64,000 nt of DNA from Perkinsela sp. CCAP 1560/9 (taxonomy: Eukaryota; Protista; Euglenozoa: Kinetoplastea). The notes under the pieces were generated by a model. That model had not been told where the DNA came from and did no database searches. It saw nothing but the letters and a program-made list of their open reading frames with translations. Below are positions 27,880-37,502 of this stretch, piece after piece. The DNA lies in the NCBI GenBank assembly GCA_965644495.1, contig CBFFSA010000004.1, positions 124,001-188,000 of the forward strand, written 5' to 3'. The translations under genes and the position numbers were made by a program. The first letter of the stretch is position 1, and each line of letters opens with the position of its first letter.

Positions 27880-28497
27880 TATATTACAGTGTTCCTCTTT
27901 ATATTTTCACTGTTTTTGTTCACTTTCTTTCAATAATCAAGGGTAGAGAGATAGTTATACAACCACCGCGAATAGTACTATAAAGTAGTTTTTGTAGTTT
28001 TGCGGACCTCTGGCTGAAACGAAGGACGTGTGTTTTCAATATCCCATTTCATTTGCTTACGTGATGTCAATTATTAATGAGAGGAGGAGTATTCTGAGAG
28101 TTCGGGATAGCTACGATTCTACGACATTTCGTTTTTCCAAGAGATATTCTTCCTACCCCCACTCTTTAAAAATGACCTGAATTCAAGGAAAAAATTGGTA
28201 TTGTTTCGCCCCGAAATGCCGAGGGTTCCTCAGATTTTTGTTTCCTAGTCTCTTCGCTGAACGCGGAGGTAATTTTAAGCAGTGTAGATATAGCAGCGGT
28301 GACTTTTAAGAGGGCTGAAACCAGTAAAATGAAAACCCAGGCTAACCTAGGCAAACCCCAGGTAGTTTCAGTCCTCTAAGTTGCACCGTCTTTAACGAAG
28401 AGACCATAATATAAAAACGTGGAGAGTGAATTACGGTGTACAATGCGTTGCCGGGAAGCAAAACCCCATATACAACTGATTGTAAATGCAACAATAG

Positions 28498-29208
28498 TCA
28501 CAAGACTACGTTCTTCACAAGATCCATTACATTTCCACTCGGAACTCGAAAAGCTTTGTCTTTGAATGATCTGTCATTGATGTATAGAAACGGGTTACCA
28601 TCCAAACTCAGGTGATTCATTCCTTTGGGAAGAGAACTCAAGCTCACATGACCACGAAACCGATTATTACTTAGAAAAAGTGAACTCAATGAGGAGGGCA
28701 GGTTTGTTAAATCTAGCGGTCCACTGAATTGATTGTTTATCAAGTTAAGTGAAGAAAGATTTTGAGGCAACTTGGTGAGACAGATCTCTCCGGAAAAATT
28801 GTTGTTGCTTAAGACCATATAGGCCATAGTGTCTGGAAGCGCAGTGAAGTCAGCCTTACCTCGAAAAAAATTATTGTCCATGCAGGTATTAAAAAGTTTC
28901 GGTGGCAGCTCCGTAAAAGGTACTTTACTTTTCATTTCATTGCTATTAAGATTTAATGTAACCACAGTATGAGGAAGAAATTCCCACTGAAGACTTCCTG
29001 AAAGGCGGAATCGATACCATTTGATTCCAATGACATGGCCTTCCTCATCGCATGTGATTCCACTCCATTTACATCCGGGATTGTCTATACTCCATGAGGG
29101 CCGATGACGTTCCACGATGAGGTTTTCAATGAGATGCGCAAGTTGATATTCTGGAGGCGGCAAGTTCCCTCGCACCTTTGCAGCCTTCAACGGAATACTC
29201 GTGTTCAT
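28498..29208 (-). CDS. LRR family protein (tandem cluster, type A)
   Basis: 236 aa, AKVRGNLPPPEY motif, cap and LRRs. Confidence 0.92.
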   Translation of the reverse strand: MNTSIPLKAAKVRGNLPPPEYQLAHLIENLIVERHRPSWSIDNPGCKWSGITCDEEGHVIGIKWYRFRLSGSLQWEFLPHTVVTLNLNSNEMKSKVPFTELPPKLFNTCMDNNFFRGKADFTALPDTMAYMVLSNNNFSGEICLTKLPQNLSSLNLINNQFSGPLDLTNLPSSLSSLFLSNNRFRGHVSLSSLPKGMNHLSLDGNPFLYINDRSFKDKAFRVPSGNVMDLVKNVVL

Positions 29209-29776
29209 TTTTTTGAATACGTGGTTGTAGAAAATAAATAGAAACTTTTATATTAAGTAACGCGTTTGGTATAATGCAGTGATTCGCTTCATGGCGGAAG
29301 TCACATTACCACTTGTTGTAAAGAAATCTATTTTAGGACGAATAAAAGCTGGACGAAAGTCTTGCCGATTCAGAATGATTAGGTCCAAAAATGGTGACAC
29401 GTAAAATATTTCCAAAGTAAAGACCTATAGGGGGGGGCTACACATTGATAGCGCGGTATATTAGGAGAGTATCACGAAGTGCTCTGTCTTCCAATATGCT
29501 ATTCTTTGGTTGCAAATTTAAAAATATTTATAAAACGTTACAAAATATTCATTACATTCATTACTGGTATTACAGATTACAAATTACAAAATATTCTTTA
29601 GTGATAGTGTTTCTCCGGTGGTATTCTCATCGGTTTAAAAAAAGTGCCCAACTTCAACCATTCAGCCACCACCGGTCATATTTAGCCCAAACGAGTCCTT
29701 GAACAGACTTAAAATTAGTTCCCGAGACTTTTGTGGGTCCAAGTATAATCGTTAAAGTCTACACTAATGAACACAA

Positions 29777-30487
29777 TTACGGAATTACCTTCTTCACAAG
29801 ATCCATTACATTTCCTCCCGGAACTTGAGAGGTTTCGTCCTTGAATGCACTGTCTTTAATGTACAGAGACGGGTTACCGTTCAAAAACAGACGACTCAGT
29901 CCTTTGGGGACAGAACTCAAGCTCACATGACCACGAAAACGATTGCTATGTAGAAAAAGTGAATTCATTGAGGAGGGAAGGTTTGTGAGATCCAACGTCC
30001 CACTGAATTGATTTCTTGCCAAGTTAAAAAAATAAAGAGTTTGAGGCAACTTGGTGAGACAGATCTCTCCGGAAAAATTGTTGTCACTTAAGACCACATA
30101 GCCTACTGTATCTGGAAGCGCAGTGAAGTCAGCTTGGCCATAAAAAAAATTACCATCCATGCAGAGAGTAGTAAGTTTAGGTGGCAGCTCCGTAAAAGGC
30201 ACCTTACCTACGAGTTTATTGCTATTGAGATTTAAAGTAACCACAGTATGAGGAAGAAATTCCCACTGAAGATCCCCTGAAAGGCGGAATAGATACCATT
30301 TGATTCCAATGACATGGCCTTCCTCATCGCATGTGATTCCACTCCATTTACATCCGGGATTGTCTATACTCCATGAGGGCCGATGACGTTCCACGATGAG
30401 GTTTTCAGTGAGATGCGCAAGTTGATATTCTGGAGGCGGCAAGTTCCCTCGCACCTTTGCAGCCTTCAACGGAATACTCGTGTTCAT
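29777..30487 (-). CDS. LRR family protein (tandem cluster, A/B chimera)
   Basis: The 5' flank and N-terminus match 28498-29208. The C-terminal half and 3' flank match 34434-35144. Confidence 0.92.
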   Translation of the reverse strand: MNTSIPLKAAKVRGNLPPPEYQLAHLTENLIVERHRPSWSIDNPGCKWSGITCDEEGHVIGIKWYLFRLSGDLQWEFLPHTVVTLNLNSNKLVGKVPFTELPPKLTTLCMDGNFFYGQADFTALPDTVGYVVLSDNNFSGEICLTKLPQTLYFFNLARNQFSGTLDLTNLPSSMNSLFLHSNRFRGHVSLSSVPKGLSRLFLNGNPSLYIKDSAFKDETSQVPGGNVMDLVKKVIP

Positions 30488-30589
30488 TTTTCTCGAATAC
30501 GTGGTTGTAGAAAATAAATAGAAACTTTGATATTAAGTAACGCGTTCGGTATAATGCAGTGATTCGCTTCATGGCGGAAGCCACATTAC

Positions 30590-31325
30590 TGTACCCGGGT
30601 ACAGTTATTATTGTCAAAAGTTTTGACAATAATATGATGATTTGGCAATAATAACGTGATTTGGAAATAATAGGAAGCTTTGCATCATATTATTGTCAAA
30701 AGTAGAGGAAGCCCACCATTTTTAAAGTATTTTTAAGTAAAACCTAGAAAGCACAGTATCAATGATCAATGGGGAAAGCAGTTTCGAATTCAGAAAAGCC
30801 CAGAATCTTTTTTTTCTCGATTAAGAATGAATTAATAAGGCTTTAGCAAGCATAGGCATAGAGATCTAAGGCTGTCGGAATTTTATAAAGTCTGTCATTT
30901 TAAATTGCTTTTTTTCAGAAGAAAGTTTTGGTTTTGATGATTTCAATATTTCCAGCAAGCTTCGTTGGCAAGCTAATTCCTTCCTTTCTTTCGTCAAGTT
31001 GGCATCCGGCGGGCCTTCAGTAAGGGAAATAAATTTATAGTCTTTACCCTCGCTGGAGGAAGTAGAATCTATTTCATGAGTAAGAGACTCTCCGTCCGAA
31101 GAAAAGGCCAAAGCATCGTCATGCGCAACAACACCAGTACCAAACTCACTCTTTTCTACGCGAAATCGTTCGAGTTGAAGAAGAAAAAGGTGTTCCGAAC
31201 AATCTGGAATATGAATGTCCTCCGAATCGGTGATCGACGACATGCTGGAGTAAATCAAAAAACTGCCCAAAAATCACCGATGAAATAATAATAAAATGAC
31301 GATAATAACGTGATTTGACAATAAT
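30590..31325 (-). mobile_element. DNA transposon remnant (possible pogo-like C-terminus)
   Basis: Abruptly truncates the LRR 5' flank. It has repeated GAT(T)TG.CAATAATAA subterminal motifs and an acidic ORF fragment ending in a PIP-box-like KQFKMTDFI. Confidence 0.45.
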
Positions 31326-32460
31326 AAAGGACAATGGAACCCATGCAGACCGCCACTGCGAGCCAGTGCCAAACGCTGCCAGCCAGTACCAAATGCTGCC
31401 AGCCACTGCGAGCCAAAAACGTCCTCTGAGGGCCTTTCTCCTGAGGCCAAACCATCTGGTTACCCGAACATTTAGTCCATGTCTTGAAGGTACGCTTCAA
31501 GGTCGGCGGTTGCCTCTCCAAGGGAGTACGCGCTACGGGGGCGGACGCTCAGAAGCAGATGGCCCCGGAGGTCAACCAAATGGAACAGGACGCGAGTCAC
31601 GATGCATGAGGTCAATTCAATGCCACACACAGAGCGCGCAACATGTAGGAAGTTGTCCATCGTGCATGAAACGCGCCCTGCGATTTCCACTTTACTACTG
31701 AGCTCCGCATTGCTTATCTCCAAACGTGGCTCGGAGAAAACGTCGGGCCTTTGTAAAGACCCGGGCTGTCGAAGCCTTGATGACGTTGAAGAGTTTGTCT
31801 TCGGCACTTGTCTCAGGCCCAAGAGCCAAAAAATCCGAATCATTCCGGATTGCTCCAGATGGTCACTGGCAAGTCAGACCCTTCACAGACAGATTTGGAA
31901 GTTCCGAGGCCGACTTCCTCTACCAGTTTCCGCTTGTCCAAGGTGGCACCAACGTGCTGTTACCAACACGCTGCGTTGACGAATTGTACGTCAACACGGC
32001 TCATCCAAGAGGTGTAAGCCGGCCCAAGAGCAGTCAATCGCTCTTGCAATGCGTCATTGCTCTCGGTAGACATAAACATTTAGGAGAAAAGTTTACGGGA
32101 AAAGAAGAATGTACTGTTGTTAGTAAAAAGGAATAAATTGATTCAGAGAAAGAAACAAAGAATAATATAGCTAGAAGCGTACACCGAATCGGAAATTCCA
32201 CATAAAAATAATAAACAAATGTAAACTTTTGCCAGTTTTGTATCTTTTCCCACCGAAAATACAAACCGCGGTCTCGGTCGAAGTACCCGCAGCCCCTCAA
32301 CTACCGCGTTTAACGAAGACCCTTAAAAAGAGAATTAATTTCTATACGTCATTCTTCTTAACTTTGTGTCATACGCTGCCATATACTAGTAGATTACGGT
32401 GTACAATGCGTTGCCGGGAAGCAAAACCCCACATACAACTGATTGTAAATGCAACAATAG

Positions 32461-33866
32461 TCACAAGACTACTTTCTTCACAAGATCCATTACATTTCTA
32501 TTCGGAACTCGAAAAGCTTTGTCTTTGAATGATCTGTCATTGATGTACAGAAACGGGTTACCATCCAAACTCAGGTGATTCATTCGTTTGGGAAGAGAAC
32601 TCAAGCTCGCATGACCACGAAACCGATTATTACTTAGAAAAAGTGAACTCAATGAGGAGGGCAGGCTTGTGAAATCTAGCGGTCCACTGAATTGATTGTT
32701 TATCAAGTAAAGTGGAGAAAGATTTTGAGGCAACTTGGTGAGACAGATCACTCCGGAAAAATTGTTGTTACTTAAGACCATATAGGCCATAGTGTCTGGA
32801 AGCGCAGTAAAGTCAGCCTCACCTCGAAAAAAATTATGGGTACAGACCACTTATATTGCACCCACTTTCAAAATAATGCTATGAATGCATTGAAATGTTT
32901 TCTTGCGCAGCTTAACTTTACACACTTTATCTCACTTCCTCCTTCCGCCTATTTTACGTCAAAAAAATATTGCAGTATGCTTAAAGTTGGCCACTTTACA
33001 CGTCAAATGCCCATGCACAGATAAAATGCTTGTGGGCAGATAAACTGCCAATGGACAGATAAAATGCCACAAAAAAAAGCTTGGCGTCAGTGCCACACGA
33101 CAGGCGGGGAAGACCGCTAGGAGGTCCCATGTTGGACCATGTTGCCCCATGTTAGGGCTGCGGGAAATATTGAGAAGACTCCTAGTTATTTATATTATAT
33201 TACCTGTTATATTACCTATTTATATTACCTGTCTGGAGGTAAGGCCCAACTTTGAGCGTAGCCCACGTCTGTGAGCAAAGCCCAACTGTGGGCGTAGCCC
33301 TGAGACAGAATTATATTTTAGCTCCCCTGCACACAGAAGCGAGCGGGGGCGCGTACTAAGAACCAACGTTTGTCCCTTCCGCAGGCTTGTGTACTTGTTT
33401 TCCTATGTTGTGTGACCGGGCGTGTGATCCAGTAGCCTTTTAGGATATGCTGTCCATTTCAACTCTGTGGCACAGTTTGACCCAAAAAATAGAAAAGTGG
33501 GTGCAATATAAGTGGGCATTACCCAAAATTATTACCCATGCAGGTATTAAAAAGTTTCGGTGGCAGCTCCGTAAAAGGCACCTTTCCTTCGAGTTTATTG
33601 CTATTGAGATTTAAAGTAACCACAGTATGAGGAAGAAATTCCCACTGAAGACTTCCTGAAAGGCGGAATAGATTCCAATTGATTCCAATAACATGGCTTT
33701 CCTCATCGCATGTGATTCCACTCCATTTACAAGCGAGATTGTCTATACTCCATGAGAGCCGATGACGTTCCACGATGAGGTTTTCAATGAGATGCGCAAG
33801 TTGATATTCTGGAGGCGGCAAGTTCCCTCGCACCTTTGCAGCCTTCAACGGAATACTCGTGTTCAT
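32461..33866 (-). pseudogene. LRR family type-A copy disrupted by a MITE
   Basis: The halves at 33525-33866 and 32461-32837 rejoin into a 236-aa ORF once the insertion and one TSD are removed. Confidence 0.92.
32838..33524. mobile_element. 687-bp MITE with 8-bp TSD (Merlin-type ends)
   Basis: TIR GGGTA....CCACTTATATTGCACCCACTTT and TSD AAAATTAT. A second copy lies at 44680-45368. Confidence 0.9.
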
Positions 33867-34433
33867 TTTTTTGAATACGTGGTTGTAGAAAATAAATAGA
33901 AACTTTGATATTAAGTAACGCGTTTGGTATAATGCAGTGATTCGCTTCATGGCGGAAGTCACATTACCACTTGTTGTAAAGAAATCTATTTTAGGACGAA
34001 TAAAAGCTGGACGAAAGTCTTGCCGATTCAGAATGATTAGGTCCAAAAATGGTGACACGTAAAATATTTCCAAAGTAAAGACCTATAGGGGGGGCTACAC
34101 ATTGATAACGCGGTATATTAGGAGAGTATCACGAAGTGCTCTGTCTTCCAATATGCTATTCTTTGGTTGCAAATTTAAAAATATTTATAAAAAGTTACAA
34201 AATATTCATTACATTCATTACTGGTATTACAGATTACAAATTACAAAATATTCTTTAGTGATAGTGTTTCTCCGGTGGTATTCTCATCGGTTTAAAAAAA
34301 GTGCCCAACTTCAACCATTCAGCCACCACCGGTCATATTTAGCCCAAACGAGTCCTTGAACAGACTTAAAATTAGTTCCCGAGACTTTTGTGGGTCCAAG
34401 TATAATCGTTAAAGTCTACACTAATGAACACAA

Positions 34434-35144
34434 TTACGGAATTACCTTCTTCACAAGATCCATTACATTTCCTCCCGGAACTTGAGAGGTTTCGTCCTTG
34501 AATGCACTGTCTTTAATGTACAGAGACGGGTTACCGTTCAAAAACAGACGACTCAGTCCTTTGGGGAGAGAACTCAAGCTGACATGACCATGAAAACGAT
34601 TGTTATTTAGAAAAAGTGAATTCATTGAGGAGGGAAGGTTTGTTAGATCCAACGGCCCACTGAATCGATTTCTTGCCAAGTTGAAAAAAAAGAGAGTTTG
34701 AGGCAACTTGGTGAGACAGATCTCTTCGGAAAAATTGTTGTCACTCAAGACCATGTAGCCCATAGTATCTGGAAGCGCAGTGAAGTCAGCTTCGCTATAA
34801 AAAAAATTACCATCCATGCAGAGAGTAGTAAGTTTAGGTGGCAGCTCCGTAAAAGGCACCTTTCCTTCGAGTTTATTGCTATTGAGATTGAACATAGCCA
34901 GAGTATGAGGAAGAAATTCCCACTGAAGATCCCCTGAAAGGCGGTATTCATCCCATTCGATTTTAATAACGTGTCCTTCCTCATCGCATGTGATTCCACT
35001 CCATTTACAAGCTGGATTGTCCATACTCCATGAGGGCCGATGACGGTACATGAAGAAGTTTTCAATGAGATGCGCAAGTTGATATTCTGGAGGCGGCAAG
35101 TTTCCTTGCACCTTTGCAGCCTTCAGTGGAACGCTCGTGTTCAT
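34434..35144 (-). CDS. LRR family protein (tandem cluster, type B)
   Basis: 236 aa from the ATG at 35144, with a unique 5' flank. Confidence 0.92.
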   Translation of the reverse strand: MNTSVPLKAAKVQGNLPPPEYQLAHLIENFFMYRHRPSWSMDNPACKWSGITCDEEGHVIKIEWDEYRLSGDLQWEFLPHTLAMFNLNSNKLEGKVPFTELPPKLTTLCMDGNFFYSEADFTALPDTMGYMVLSDNNFSEEICLTKLPQTLFFFNLARNRFSGPLDLTNLPSSMNSLFLNNNRFHGHVSLSSLPKGLSRLFLNGNPSLYIKDSAFKDETSQVPGGNVMDLVKKVIP

Positions 35145-35510
35145 TCTTTGGATCAGAAAATAAAATAAAAGAATGGGTGAAACTGAAGCAAATTTCATTT
35201 GTTTTTCTATTTTTTTCAATCAAATTTTCTGATTGTAGAAAATACATCTCGAAATATTTTACTTGTACATTTTTTGTATTTCTCGCTATTCATTTCGTCA
35301 TTTTCAGTTGCTTGGTCTATCTTTCCTTTAGTTAGATATATTTCCCTTAGTTAGATATATTTCTTCCCCGAAACAATTGGCGTTCCACTCGCATTTATGT
35401 GTCATGATTGTTGGAGTCACCCGCTATAGGTCATAGTTTTCTGGCCTCATCCTATGCAATTTATGGTAACTTGTGACTACCCCAGAGATAAGCGCATTTA
35501 ATATTTTTAA

Positions 35511-37502
35511 TTAGCGGACACCCGCCTTCCTCCACTCTTTTACCGCGGAGGATAGTATCGCGGCGTTGCCTTTTTGAATAGCCACATTAATGGCTTGTAG
35601 TGCATGACGCAGGAAACCTTTCCTGTCATACGTATGCCTTGCGATCTCCTTTAGGAGGAGTACGGTGCGCTTCCCTGCCACACCAAAAACGGTAAATGCA
35701 AGGGGGTAGAAATGCATACCCCTTTTCGTGTCACTGTGCGCTTTTGCTTTCAAGCTTTCCACCCTTTCTAGAGTGTTGCCAGGCGCTACCCATTCGGCCT
35801 TAACATAAGAAGGGGCGAGGGGGTTAACGACGGTCACGTCCACCAGACATATCTTCCCTCCCAGCATAAAGCAGACGTCGGGGCCCTGACCAGCAGAGAA
35901 TCGGGGTTCATGATTGTCAGGAGTGAATCCGTACTGTCGTAGCAAGTGCACGAAGGCATTCTTAACAAGTTTGTGGCGAGTGGCCGCAGTGTCGCCTTTG
36001 ACTTTATTGCAGTCAAGGGCGTGCACAACAAAATCTTTGTTTGAGAGGATGTCTCCGCGCTCACATTGTGCGAAAGGATCCGAAGTAGGTGCTATCAAGT
36101 ATCGCATGCGCATGGCTGTTTGCCATTCTGCGTCGCGCATGAAGTACTCACCCCGATTCCTACGCGCCTCTGTCCAATTGCGCGTTCTCTTGTCCATCAA
36201 CTGAAGTGAATGGACGTCATGTAGTTCGCTGGTTTCTTTACGCACTGCTGACTTCGATTCTTCATATCTTGTCAAGGCAGAACGTCGTCTTTCCATACAC
36301 CCTAATACCTCAGCTTTTGTGCGAGAATACAGAGTTGCCGCTTGCTGCGCAAAAGGTTTCGCCCCCAAAAGGTCGCCCGTCATGAGAGTACTGTGAAACG
36401 GGTTCTTTTCCAGGTCTTCGAAGCCTCCTAGCAGCTCTGAGGCACACTCCTGTATGGCCTTGTCCGCTAACACGTTGGCTTTTGCCGTTACCTCCGGCTC
36501 ATGACACCGCATTAGGTAGTTCCACCGGGGGACTCCACATCTCTTCAGCAAAATGTAAGCACTTTGTAACGAAAGATGTTGCAGCCGCTCCAGGAATGTC
36601 TGCAATTTAGGCATTTGGTTGACTACCCATCTGGTTTCATCCGCGCCTTCCTTGGAGACGAATGCACCTAGGAGCTTTTGTCCTTGCTCCGCATGCTCTA
36701 TGTTCATACCTCTGAAAGGAGCGTACTGGTCATTGAAATGCGTCGAAAGCTTACATTTGGCCGGATATACCTCCAGTCCTATTCCCGAAGCGTGATCACA
36801 GAGAGCGCCAAACGCCTGTGCGACACGTTCTGCCGGGCCGATGATTGAAAGGTCGTCTAGGTAAGCCCAAAGCGTCAGATCACTGAACTCATCCTTCAAT
36901 TTTCCAAGAATTTGGTGCAAGCCGAGAGAAAACAGTAACGGTCCTAATGGGTCGCCTTGTCGGACTCCCCTCAGAACCTTAGTCGGCGAACACGAGGAGT
37001 TAAATATCGTAGTTGGAGCCCCATATACATATGAGGTCACCCCGTATAGCTCGTGAAATTCATCATTTCCCCTTAGATACTGAAACACCGCGTTTCTTTC
37101 AATTGAATTGAAGGCGTTACGGATGTCTACTGTCAAGAGCACAAAGTCCGCTTTTTGACGAAACGCGTTTCTTGCCCTTAATATTATTTTAGGTCCTCCG
37201 TTTCTTGTTCCAACACCAAATTGTGTATCTTGGAAAAGTCTGCCCGTTGCTTCTGCTACCCTGTCCATGGCGATTTGGCTAGCCAATTTAAGAAAGATTT
37301 CCCCCATTGCTATAGGTCGGCAGGCTGGGGATCCTTCTACGGAAGGGCCCTCCTTGCGCAGCAAGATCAGAGTGGAGCTGGTTAAGACGTCCCTTAGCTG
37401 AGCGTCTCGGGAGTTTCGCAGCACTGCTGTAGCTATCCAAGTAACGCAGGCCACGATATCCTGGTCCTCTAGGAGCGGTATATTGGCGTTTCGTTGTTTC
37501 AA
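35511..37502 (-). mobile_element. 5'-truncated non-LTR retrotransposon, CRE/SLACS/CZAR clade (RT plus restriction-like endonuclease)
   Basis: RPIAMGE, QFGVG, VDIRNAFNS, GVRQGDPLGPLLF, AYLDD, a degenerate zinc knuckle (C..G...HALDC), RHKLV, PDV...VDVTV, and a C-terminal IQKGNA. Confidence 0.92.

Follow-up and report, generated by a model that had tools for sequence, protein, structure and literature searches.

A duplicated pair of leucine-rich repeat genes in a kinetoplastid, with a low-divergence tract that probably arose by gene conversion across the spacer and both gene ends

Four minus-strand leucine-rich repeat (LRR) gene copies in the kinetoplastid Perkinsela sp. CCAP 1560/9, here called A1, B1, A2 and B2, make up a duplicated A-spacer-B unit in which two near-identical spacers lie beside clearly diverged genes. 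It is attractive to read such a frozen spacer as the result of selection on the genes, but it is here probably the trace of a recent conversion tract. The locus as a whole is probably best explained by an older duplication of the unit followed by recent non-allelic gene conversion, along one tract between the two units and another between A1 and B1, with concave-face replacements piling up in the older paralogs because these positions are the least constrained. This is ordinary gene-family evolution and not a special diversity generator. The window that was analysed comprises 64,000 nucleotides, and all positions given below are those of the window.

The first unit (28430-30488) contains A1 (28498-29208), an open reading frame that forms an intact LRR gene of 236 residues, and B1 (29777-30487), an intact mosaic gene of the same length whose 5' third is A1-type, the rest being B-type. 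Between them lies spacer 1 (29209-29776, minus strand), which consists of the 3' flank of B1 and the 5' leader of A1. An A-type 5' leader is also found upstream of B1 (30488-30589, minus strand), where it shares 95-98% identity with the A1 and A2 leaders. The second unit (32393-35146) contains A2 in two pieces, spacer 2 (33867-34433, minus strand), which is the counterpart of spacer 1, and B2 (34434-35144), an intact gene of 236 residues that is the least converted B-type copy. The outer flanks of the two units are unrelated. The upstream flank of B2 is unrelated to those of the other copies and abuts a retrotransposon, with an RVT_1 match in the open reading frame at 35511-37502, beyond B2.

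A2 is dead. It is split by a non-autonomous inverted-repeat element of 687 bp (32838-33524), which has 31-nt terminal inverted repeats and an 8-bp target duplication, AAAATTAT. The 5' piece (33525-33866, minus strand) holds codons 1-114 and the 3' piece (32461-32837, minus strand) holds codons 115-236, after the target duplication. The changes private to A2 are 13 non-synonymous against one synonymous, and 13 of the 23 replacements between A1 and A2 are private to this transposon-broken copy. A contig joining 32829 to 33525 was considered as an empty-site form of A2; it is probably A1 placed on A2 and was left out. The A2 pieces were compared with A1 separately in pairwise tests. Placed end to end in A1 codon numbering, they entered the runs test, the table of sites and the parsimony counts, and they were excluded from the maximum likelihood (ML) selection fits.

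The near-identity of the spacers described in an earlier note on this DNA amounts to three substitutions and one single-base indel in 568 columns, with variants of spacer 1 at 29249, 29451 and 29536, and the coding counts of that note were likewise recovered. A1 and the two A2 pieces differ at 35 nucleotides and at 23 of 236 residues, and B1 and B2 differ at 53 nucleotides and 31 residues, 12 of which come after residue 106, within the last 130. Absent from the earlier description is the contiguous extension of the near-identity beyond the spacer and into both gene ends. The low-divergence tract at 29100-29910 in unit 1, with its partner at 33758-34567 in unit 2, takes in nt 1-109 of A, the whole spacer and nt 578-711 of B (109 nt of A and 134 nt of B). 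There are four differences in its 811 nt, compared with 89 in the 1247 nt of the unit that lie outside it (Fisher p=1.7e-15), and within coding DNA the count is 0/243 inside the tract against 88/1179 beyond it (p=8e-8). Inside the tract the divergence of spacer and coding sequence is not distinguishable (p=0.32).

Outside the tract dS is 0.05-0.14 (0.06 in A, 0.14 over nt 307-576 of B; dN/dS 0.4-0.84) against a divergence of about 0.005 in the spacer, and the units diverge by 4-7% outside the converted tracts. The proposal that the coding sequence is diversified by selection whilst the spacer stays fixed does not survive this comparison of coding with spacer divergence, as the low divergence crosses both coding boundaries and dS is also raised outside it. 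Moreover, with synonymous divergence at this level, the gap between coding sequence and spacer cannot be put down to amino-acid selection. The spacers look frozen, it would appear, because a single recent tract made the two units nearly identical over its length. No comparable low-divergence pattern is seen in subfamily pairs other than the A1/A2-B1/B2 units.

Exchange between the copies is most directly visible in B1, which alternates between donors as had been described. The first 207 nt, together with about 100 nt upstream, are A1-type, and over these 207 nt B1 has two differences from A1, nine from A2 and 26 from B2. Further on, the SGD codon (nt 213-215) is of B type, A-type sequence returns at nt 244-255, and everything from nt 309 onward is B-type. 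A Sawyer-type permutation runs test on 236 polymorphic sites, used in place of GENECONV/RDP, bears out the patchwork exchange that had been claimed (P<=0.0004), with P<0.0002 both between A1 and B1 (nt 81-196) and between B1 and B2 (nt 578-708), and P=0.0002-0.0004 for A2-B2 and A2-B1. A derived A-type base is also present at isolated single sites in B1 or B2 (nt 384, 399), which hints at further very short exchanges outside a simple two-tract model. Outside the tracts, the majority of differences are scattered single changes that occur in no paralog, and the nearest other copies are just 82-89% identical at the nucleotide level.

A1 carries a patch of its own (28921-28948, minus strand; gene nt 261-288), in which nine substitutions in 28 nt change NKLEG to NEMKS. 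A search of the 21-Mb assembly with an 81-nt query and a 23-nt pattern found no donor with <=3 mismatches, the patch itself being the sole match. Outside the patch the private changes of A1 are all synonymous (three, with no non-synonymous change).

It is likely that the two-gene A-spacer-B unit was duplicated some time ago and that non-allelic conversion among the four copies later overwrote them in part. A recent tract, about 0.8 kb long, would have extended from 134 nt before the end of B, across the spacer, to 109 nt into A. A second recent tract would have carried the A1 leader and the first 207 nt of the gene over to B1, ending patchily, to give the chimera. The remaining differences would then be ordinary point substitutions, and A2 would have been knocked out by the transposon insertion and would now be decaying. 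The boundaries of the tract, the mosaic, the dN and dS values, the interruption of A2 and the LRR fold come directly from the analysis, while gene conversion rather than crossover is the probable mechanism and the order of events is likewise inferred.

These genes belong to a very large family of small LRR proteins of the plant type, with 1530 candidates at first look, in a genome whose spliced-leader match is of the kinetoplastid type. Published work on Bodo saltans yielded no match to the family. The A1 protein has an N-cap with a Cys pair followed by seven 23-residue repeats, which begin at residues 59, 82, 105, 128, 151, 174 and 197. It is predicted by AlphaFold2 to form an LRR solenoid (pLDDT 90.6) with short DSSP strands at 59-63, 84-86, 107-109, 130-132, 153-155, 176-178 and 199-201, and the model has the tandem LxxLxLxxN repeats and the concave parallel beta-sheet of the plant-specific type of LRR solenoid. 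The Pfam matches lie near threshold, at 19.6-21.7 bits for LRR_1 (cut-off 20.6) and 19.5-20.3 bits for LRRNT_2 (cut-off 20.7). The family consensus is the 23-residue LPxxLxxLxLxxNxFSGxLDLTx, without a conserved W, and the start MNTS is kept in 9/9 subfamily copies. Inspection for a signal peptide or hydrophobic tail found that in most relatives the N-terminus is short and non-hydrophobic and a hydrophobic tail is absent; KRRK-like motifs occur in some relatives. An upstream in-frame ATG with a signal peptide (MKRITALY... or MKFASV...) was considered and rejected, as there is a stop in A1 and the leader is out of frame in B1. The leader occupies three different frames among the copies and is hence non-coding.

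Variable sites were related to structure via the DSSP strand positions of the A1 model, with the x residues of xxLxLxx taken as the concave-face positions. Among subfamily members, 17-23 of the 35 x codons differ compared with 29-40 of the 199 others (Fisher p 1e-5 to 1e-7). Between B1 and B2, 9 of 30 replacements fall on the 35 x codons (p=0.024), whereas between A1 and A2 there is no enrichment, with 6 of 23 replacements at x positions (p=0.13). The view that changes gather at xxLxLxx positions thus holds for the subfamily and for B1/B2, but not for A1/A2. The further claim of diversifying selection is borderline, as omega only nominally exceeds 1 at concave positions in the partitioned GY94 fits in IQ-TREE and the parsimony count that took the place of PAML M7/M8. 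The ML fit, which takes no account of recombination, puts omega at 1.70 for x positions and at 0.44 for the others (LRT p=0.048), the count-based value is about 1.1 (1.11, P=0.42), and in ten other young family pairs the pooled pN/pS at x positions is 0.54. Whole-gene pairwise dN/dS is 0.42-1.05. The concave-face positions may be weakly positively selected. Weak positive selection at such positions is usual in most LRR families.

It is unlikely that the family represents a true kinetoplastid recognition repertoire, in which frequent, short non-allelic conversions keep reshuffling concave-face residues under diversifying selection. If it did, it would be an innate, germline-encoded flagellate counterpart of the LRR receptor arsenals of plants and animals, and micro-tracts such as the A1 patch without a donor and the lone A-type bases seen in B1 and B2 would belong to such reshuffling. 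No evidence was found for a role of the A/B proteins in immunity. The analogy with VLR, NLR or antigen repertoires that had been drawn for the locus is at most conjectural. The locus has no cassette array and no incomplete germline gene with donor cassettes, as would be expected of lamprey VLR-like assembly or programmed conversion. All copies except A2 are complete open reading frames, and exchange runs between full paralogs in tracts of an ordinary kind.

On a rival reading in the spirit of the earlier note, the duplication of the unit would be very recent and dated by its spacers, and the coding sequences would since have been diversified into a variable binding repertoire by patchwork conversion from other family members and by positive selection on the ligand-binding face. 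The mosaicism on which this distinctly improbable reading draws is real, and the x-position enrichment, in the subfamily as in B1/B2, and the ML omega speak in its favour. However, within the tract the coding ends are no less identical than the spacer, and the differences outside the tracts are mostly singletons without a match in a paralog. Conversion from the other copies, given their 82-89% identity, would bring in dense blocks of change rather than the sparse 4-7% that is observed. Moreover, dS is raised as much as dN, the replacements between A1 and A2 are not enriched at x positions and lie mostly in the dead copy, and the pN/pS at x positions in the ten young pairs also tells against it.

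A chimeric B1 and an identical tract might also arise as an artefact of assembly or polishing, either as mosaics of strains or alleles or through cross-polishing between repeats. The comparison contigs (Logan) are just 100-750 nt long, no single one reaching across a copy, other samples of the same organism differ at many positions of the region, and an A2-like contig in sample X2 runs into unlike sequence left of 32393. A related contig is also present in a metagenome assembly (ENA ERZ24900291), and the genome may be metagenome-derived. An artefact is nevertheless highly improbable, as the unrelated outer flanks argue that the two units are not stacked alleles, an X1 contig from an independent sample matches 34065-34334 exactly and carries the spacer-2 variants, and contigs from both X1 and X2 begin at the unit edge at 32393 with an exact copy-specific match. 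In addition, the 1.13-Mb contig C4 implies long-read data, which normally resolve 2-kb repeats of 95% identity.

Parts of the spacer, namely the first 170-315 nt past the B stop and the last approximately 60 nt before the A start (the 5' leader), are recognisable in the paralogs L004, L006 and L007 at 81-89%, and the 3' intergenic regions of the Leishmania PSA genes are also highly conserved (PMC2584048). L004 and L007 have diverged by 6.7% (3' flank), 9.6% (coding sequence) and 11.8% (5' flank), and L004 and L006 by 15.7%, 11.3% and 9.3%, respectively; for L003/L008 the pattern is reversed, with 0.7% in the coding sequence against 5.4% in the flank. Purifying selection on the spacer, as a 3'-UTR or as trans-splicing signals for polycistronic expression, whilst the coding DNA drifts is therefore extremely improbable, as the same flanks in older paralogs have diverged by 7-16%, about as much as the coding sequence and against 0.5% here, which leaves a 15-fold deficit that such constraint cannot explain, and as the identical tract disregards coding boundaries, synonymous sites included, and has no match to a structured RNA family (an Rfam search of the spacer gave a single chance match at E=0.17). 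The spacer was also considered as a mobile element, which was rejected since it is found only beside subfamily copies on contig C4.

An older unit duplication followed by recent conversion has parallels in known systems. In plant resistance clusters, both of NLR genes such as RPP8 and of receptor-like LRR genes, exchange occurs between tandem paralogs, mosaics are found and variation lies on exposed xxLxLxx residues. Exchange, mosaic copies and exposed-residue variation are also features of the A/B copies. Unlike the plant resistance genes, these copies encode LRR-only products of 236 residues with no NB-ARC, kinase or transmembrane part. The best PDB matches of the A1 model are small plant LRR ectodomains (PRK6, SERK, SRF6 and BIR), with TM-scores of 0.6-0.73 and 21-28% identity, which share with it the N-cap with a Cys pair and the plant-specific second beta-sheet. 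This match is at the level of the fold only, and the kinetoplastid proteins appear to be without a secretion signal. A general survey of kinetoplastid tandem arrays describes conversion as both homogenising arrays and adding variation, with conflicting phylogenies from different parts of the repeat unit; it deals neither with this LRR family nor with this organism.

The PSA/GP46 arrays on chromosome 12 of Leishmania consist of tandem LRR genes with chimeras formed by intergenic recombination (Devault and Banuls 2008, PMC2584048). They also show segmental duplication of multi-gene blocks, variable sites at exposed LRR positions and 3' intergenic regions that are more alike than the coding sequence, for which the authors left conversion versus constraint open (PMC2584048). 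The present locus resembles them as a set of tandem kinetoplastid LRR genes with chimeras, block duplication and spacers more alike than the coding sequence. The PSA repeat has 24-25 residues and the signature G(T/S)LPxxWxx(M/I)xxLxxLxLxxxx(V/L/I)(S/T), in which G, P and W are almost invariant. Besides these repeats, PSA proteins carry a signal peptide, Cys-rich flanks, a region rich in Thr/Ser and an anchor, either GPI or membrane, and codeml detected strong positive selection (PMC2584048). In contrast, the repeat described here has 23 residues and no conserved W, inspection found neither signal peptide nor anchor, and the selection signal is borderline at best. As the same processes are documented in Leishmania PSA and in plant resistance genes, the novelty of the locus is low and its value descriptive. 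It offers a clean and datable example, from a lineage of poorly known kinetoplastids, of the way in which a huge gene family may be shaped by non-allelic conversion, by transposon knock-out and by a relaxation of constraint on the concave face.

The duplicated unit consists of two minus-strand LRR genes, A and B, separated by a spacer, and is present twice. The first unit carries A1 (28498-29208) and B1 (29777-30487), and the second A2, which is in two pieces (33525-33866 and 32461-32837), and B2 (34434-35144). Homology spans 28430 to ~30488 in the first unit and 32393 to ~35146 in the second, with a sharp end on either side, beyond which the flanking sequences are unrelated. Directly upstream of B1 lies a 102-nt copy of the A-type leader, and B2 adjoins a reverse-transcriptase ORF. 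Two short palindromes (TATTATTGTCAAAAC/TTTTGACAATAATA and ACTGTACCCGGGTACAGT) at 30590-30640 lie exactly where the A-type upstream homology of B1 ends and may mark the edge of another insertion. The DNA between the units contains a very high-copy repeat (31715-32114), with a Logan word depth of 1,000-35,000 in three samples, against tens elsewhere. At short range, Logan contigs also reveal copy-specific stretches in independent samples, together with strain differences.

The spacers differ by 3 substitutions and 1 indel over 568 columns. A1 and A2 differ at 35 nt and 23 amino acids, and B1 and B2 at 53 nt and 31 amino acids, 12 of them within the last 130 residues, so that the earlier note had described the spacers and the coding counts accurately. 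Its claim that coding sequence diverges while the spacer stays fixed does not hold, since the region of low divergence crosses both gene ends. In unit-1 coordinates there are no differences in 29100-29248, four in the spacer and none in 29537-29910; the near-identity is thus one contiguous tract of 811 nt, overlooked in that note, which reaches 109 nt into the start of gene A and takes in the final 134 nt of gene B. The tract has 4 differences in 811 positions against 89 in 1247 for the remainder of the unit (p=1.7e-15). Coding DNA behaves likewise, with 0/243 differences inside the tract and 88/1179 outside it (p=8e-8), and within the tract the spacer (4/568) is indistinguishable from coding DNA (0/243; p=0.32). 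The contrast is one of inside versus outside a recombination tract, not of non-coding versus coding DNA.

Exchange between the copies is also recorded within the genes. A site table bears out the alternation of A-type and B-type segments that had been noticed in B1, and a Sawyer-type permutation test covering 236 polymorphic sites in eight copies identifies fragments shared by A1 and B1 (nt 81-196, P<0.0002), B1 and B2 (nt 578-708, P<0.0002), A2 and B2 (nt 256-308, P=0.0002) and A2 and B1 (nt 216-277, P=0.0004). Over nt 1-207, B1 has 2 differences from A1, 9 from A2 and 26 from B2, which indicates that the 5' third of B1 and its leader were recently copied from A1, or in the reverse direction. 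The B-type SGD codon that remains within the A1-B1 tract fits patchy heteroduplex repair, and at a few isolated sites (e.g. nt 384 and 399) a derived A-type base occurs in just one B copy, a possible sign of very short exchanges or of homoplasy.

A2 is split between codons 114 and 115 by a non-autonomous inverted-repeat element of 687 bp (32838-33524), with 31-nt terminal repeats (GGGTA..CCACTTATATTGCACCCACTTT) containing 3 mismatches and flanked by an 8-bp target duplication, AAAATTAT. For pairwise tests each A2 piece was compared to A1 on its own, and for site-by-site counts the pieces were set into A1 codon numbering. Of 14 changes private to A2, 13 are non-synonymous and family-conserved residues including P44 and G57 are lost; these changes, which look like the decay of a dead gene, explain most of the residues at which A1 and A2 differ. 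In A1, private replacements are confined to one patch (28921-28948), where 9 substitutions in 28 nt turn the scaffold NKLEG into NEMKS, and a search across the assembly found no donor for it.

Diversifying selection on the ligand-facing surface had been offered, together with gene conversion, as the source of the coding changes. AlphaFold2, given a 27-sequence family alignment, returns a confident LRR solenoid (pLDDT 90.6, pTM 0.86), in which the short strands are predicted to fall exactly on x3-L4-x5 of seven repeats and whose top PDB neighbours are the small plant LRR ectodomains PRK6, SERK and SRF6. Among subfamily members, the 35 codons predicted to lie on the concave face (xxLxLxx) carry a strong excess of replacements (p=1e-5 to 1e-7), and this part of the proposal stands, although A1/A2 taken by themselves show no significant excess (6/23, p=0.13). 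Diversifying selection itself is not demonstrated: omega at concave codons is 1.11 by parsimony count, against 0.40 elsewhere (P=0.42 for omega >1), and 1.70 against 0.44 by partitioned GY94 on seven intact copies, where a likelihood-ratio test for departure from omega=1 yields p=0.048 with recombination ignored. Recombination inflates such omega tests. Pooled pN/pS in ten other young paralog pairs genome-wide is 0.54 at concave codons and 0.35 in the rest of the LRR domain. Of the protein's surfaces, the concave face is clearly under the least constraint. Outside the tract dS is 0.059 for A (A1 patch left out) and 0.142 for B nt 307-576, with dN/dS of 0.74 and 0.40, respectively. As dS lies ten- to thirty-fold above the spacer divergence of ~0.005, positive selection on amino acids cannot explain the gap between coding and spacer DNA.

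Constraint on the spacer fares no better. The spacer has parts in common with three paralogs on the same contig, C4 (L004, L006 and L007), namely its 5' leader and 170-315 nt directly past the B stop codon, and these parts are 81-89% identical to those paralogs. In control pairs flanks diverge about as fast as CDS: L004/L007 differ by 6.7% in the 3' flank, 9.6% in the CDS and 11.8% in the 5' flank, and L004/L006 by 15.7%, 11.3% and 9.3%. Hence constraint cannot account for the gap either, and the pattern of a spacer far below its coding sequence is local to the A/B unit pair. L003 (C4:25292-25990) and L008 (C4:13309-13746; truncated after ~146 matching residues), 12 kb apart, have the reverse pattern in the two regions compared (CDS 0.7%, 5' flank 5.4%). 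The spacer does not belong to a dispersed repeat, and an Rfam search matched no family.

The locus is best read as ordinary, well-resolved non-allelic gene conversion on top of an older duplication within a large family of LRR genes. Overall, the earlier observation is confirmed and its interpretation survives in part, with exchange between copies upheld by the permutation test and a selection-driven coding/spacer contrast discarded. In the 21 Mb, 110-contig assembly the A1 protein had 1530 first-look candidates, of which 211 were scored matches, indicating a very large family, and a word-based protein search returned unnamed relatives only. The 3' end of a kinetoplastid-type spliced leader (CAGTTTCTGTACCTTGTTG) is found ~500 times genome-wide and its reversed control 0-1 times, and the minus strand carries nearly all long ORFs of the window, as expected for polycistronic units.

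All nine subfamily copies begin at the same MNTS codon. A leader of ~60 nt (TTAATATCAAAGTTTC...TTCTACAACCACGT) is conserved in nucleotide sequence at 29209-29260, 30488-30540 and 33867-33920, as well as upstream of the L004, L006 and L007 start codons; it lies in three different frames and so is non-coding, and is probably a trans-splice acceptor with 5' UTR. The A1 and A2 leaders have no AG from the pyrimidine run to the ATG. A contig of sequencing run X5 over 29038-29237 runs on with 12 letters, in reverse complement TGTTG+TTTCACC, in which the spliced leader's final 5 nt, TGTTG, abut the leader of an L004-type paralog at an AG ~45 nt before the start codon; this hints that X5 may be RNA and that subfamily transcripts may be trans-spliced at that AG. 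Only in B2 does an ATG lie upstream in frame (35145-35219); it would add the signal-peptide-like MKFASVSPILLFYFLIQR, but with a pyrimidine run and AG 2 nt before the normal start this extension is probably absent from the mRNA. Relatives on other contigs (L011-L030) are mostly ~240-aa ORFs with short, non-hydrophobic N-termini, and several longer members have KRRK or KRRR motifs ahead of a conserved KVRG..LP.EY box. Judged from these sequence features, the proteins look intracellular, even though their fold resembles that of ectodomains. On a 204-kb metagenome contig (ENA ERZ24900291, ctg4008l), a subfamily protein (L040) identical to P0003 lies between MIF4G-like and ClpB-like genes, so an assembly of this organism, or of one closely related to it, already exists from an environmental or host-associated source.

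In T. brucei, conversion in tandem arrays is described as both removing and introducing variation (PMC1855330). In the Leishmania PSA genes on chromosome 12, recombination-made chimeric LRR genes, block duplication, variable exposed positions and strikingly conserved 3' intergenic regions, the last with the cause undecided, are all found (PMC2584048), and the Perkinsela locus shares these features. In contrast to PSA, the Perkinsela family has a 23-residue repeat with no conserved W, and no signal peptide or anchor seen on inspection, and is hence an analogue of PSA rather than a member.
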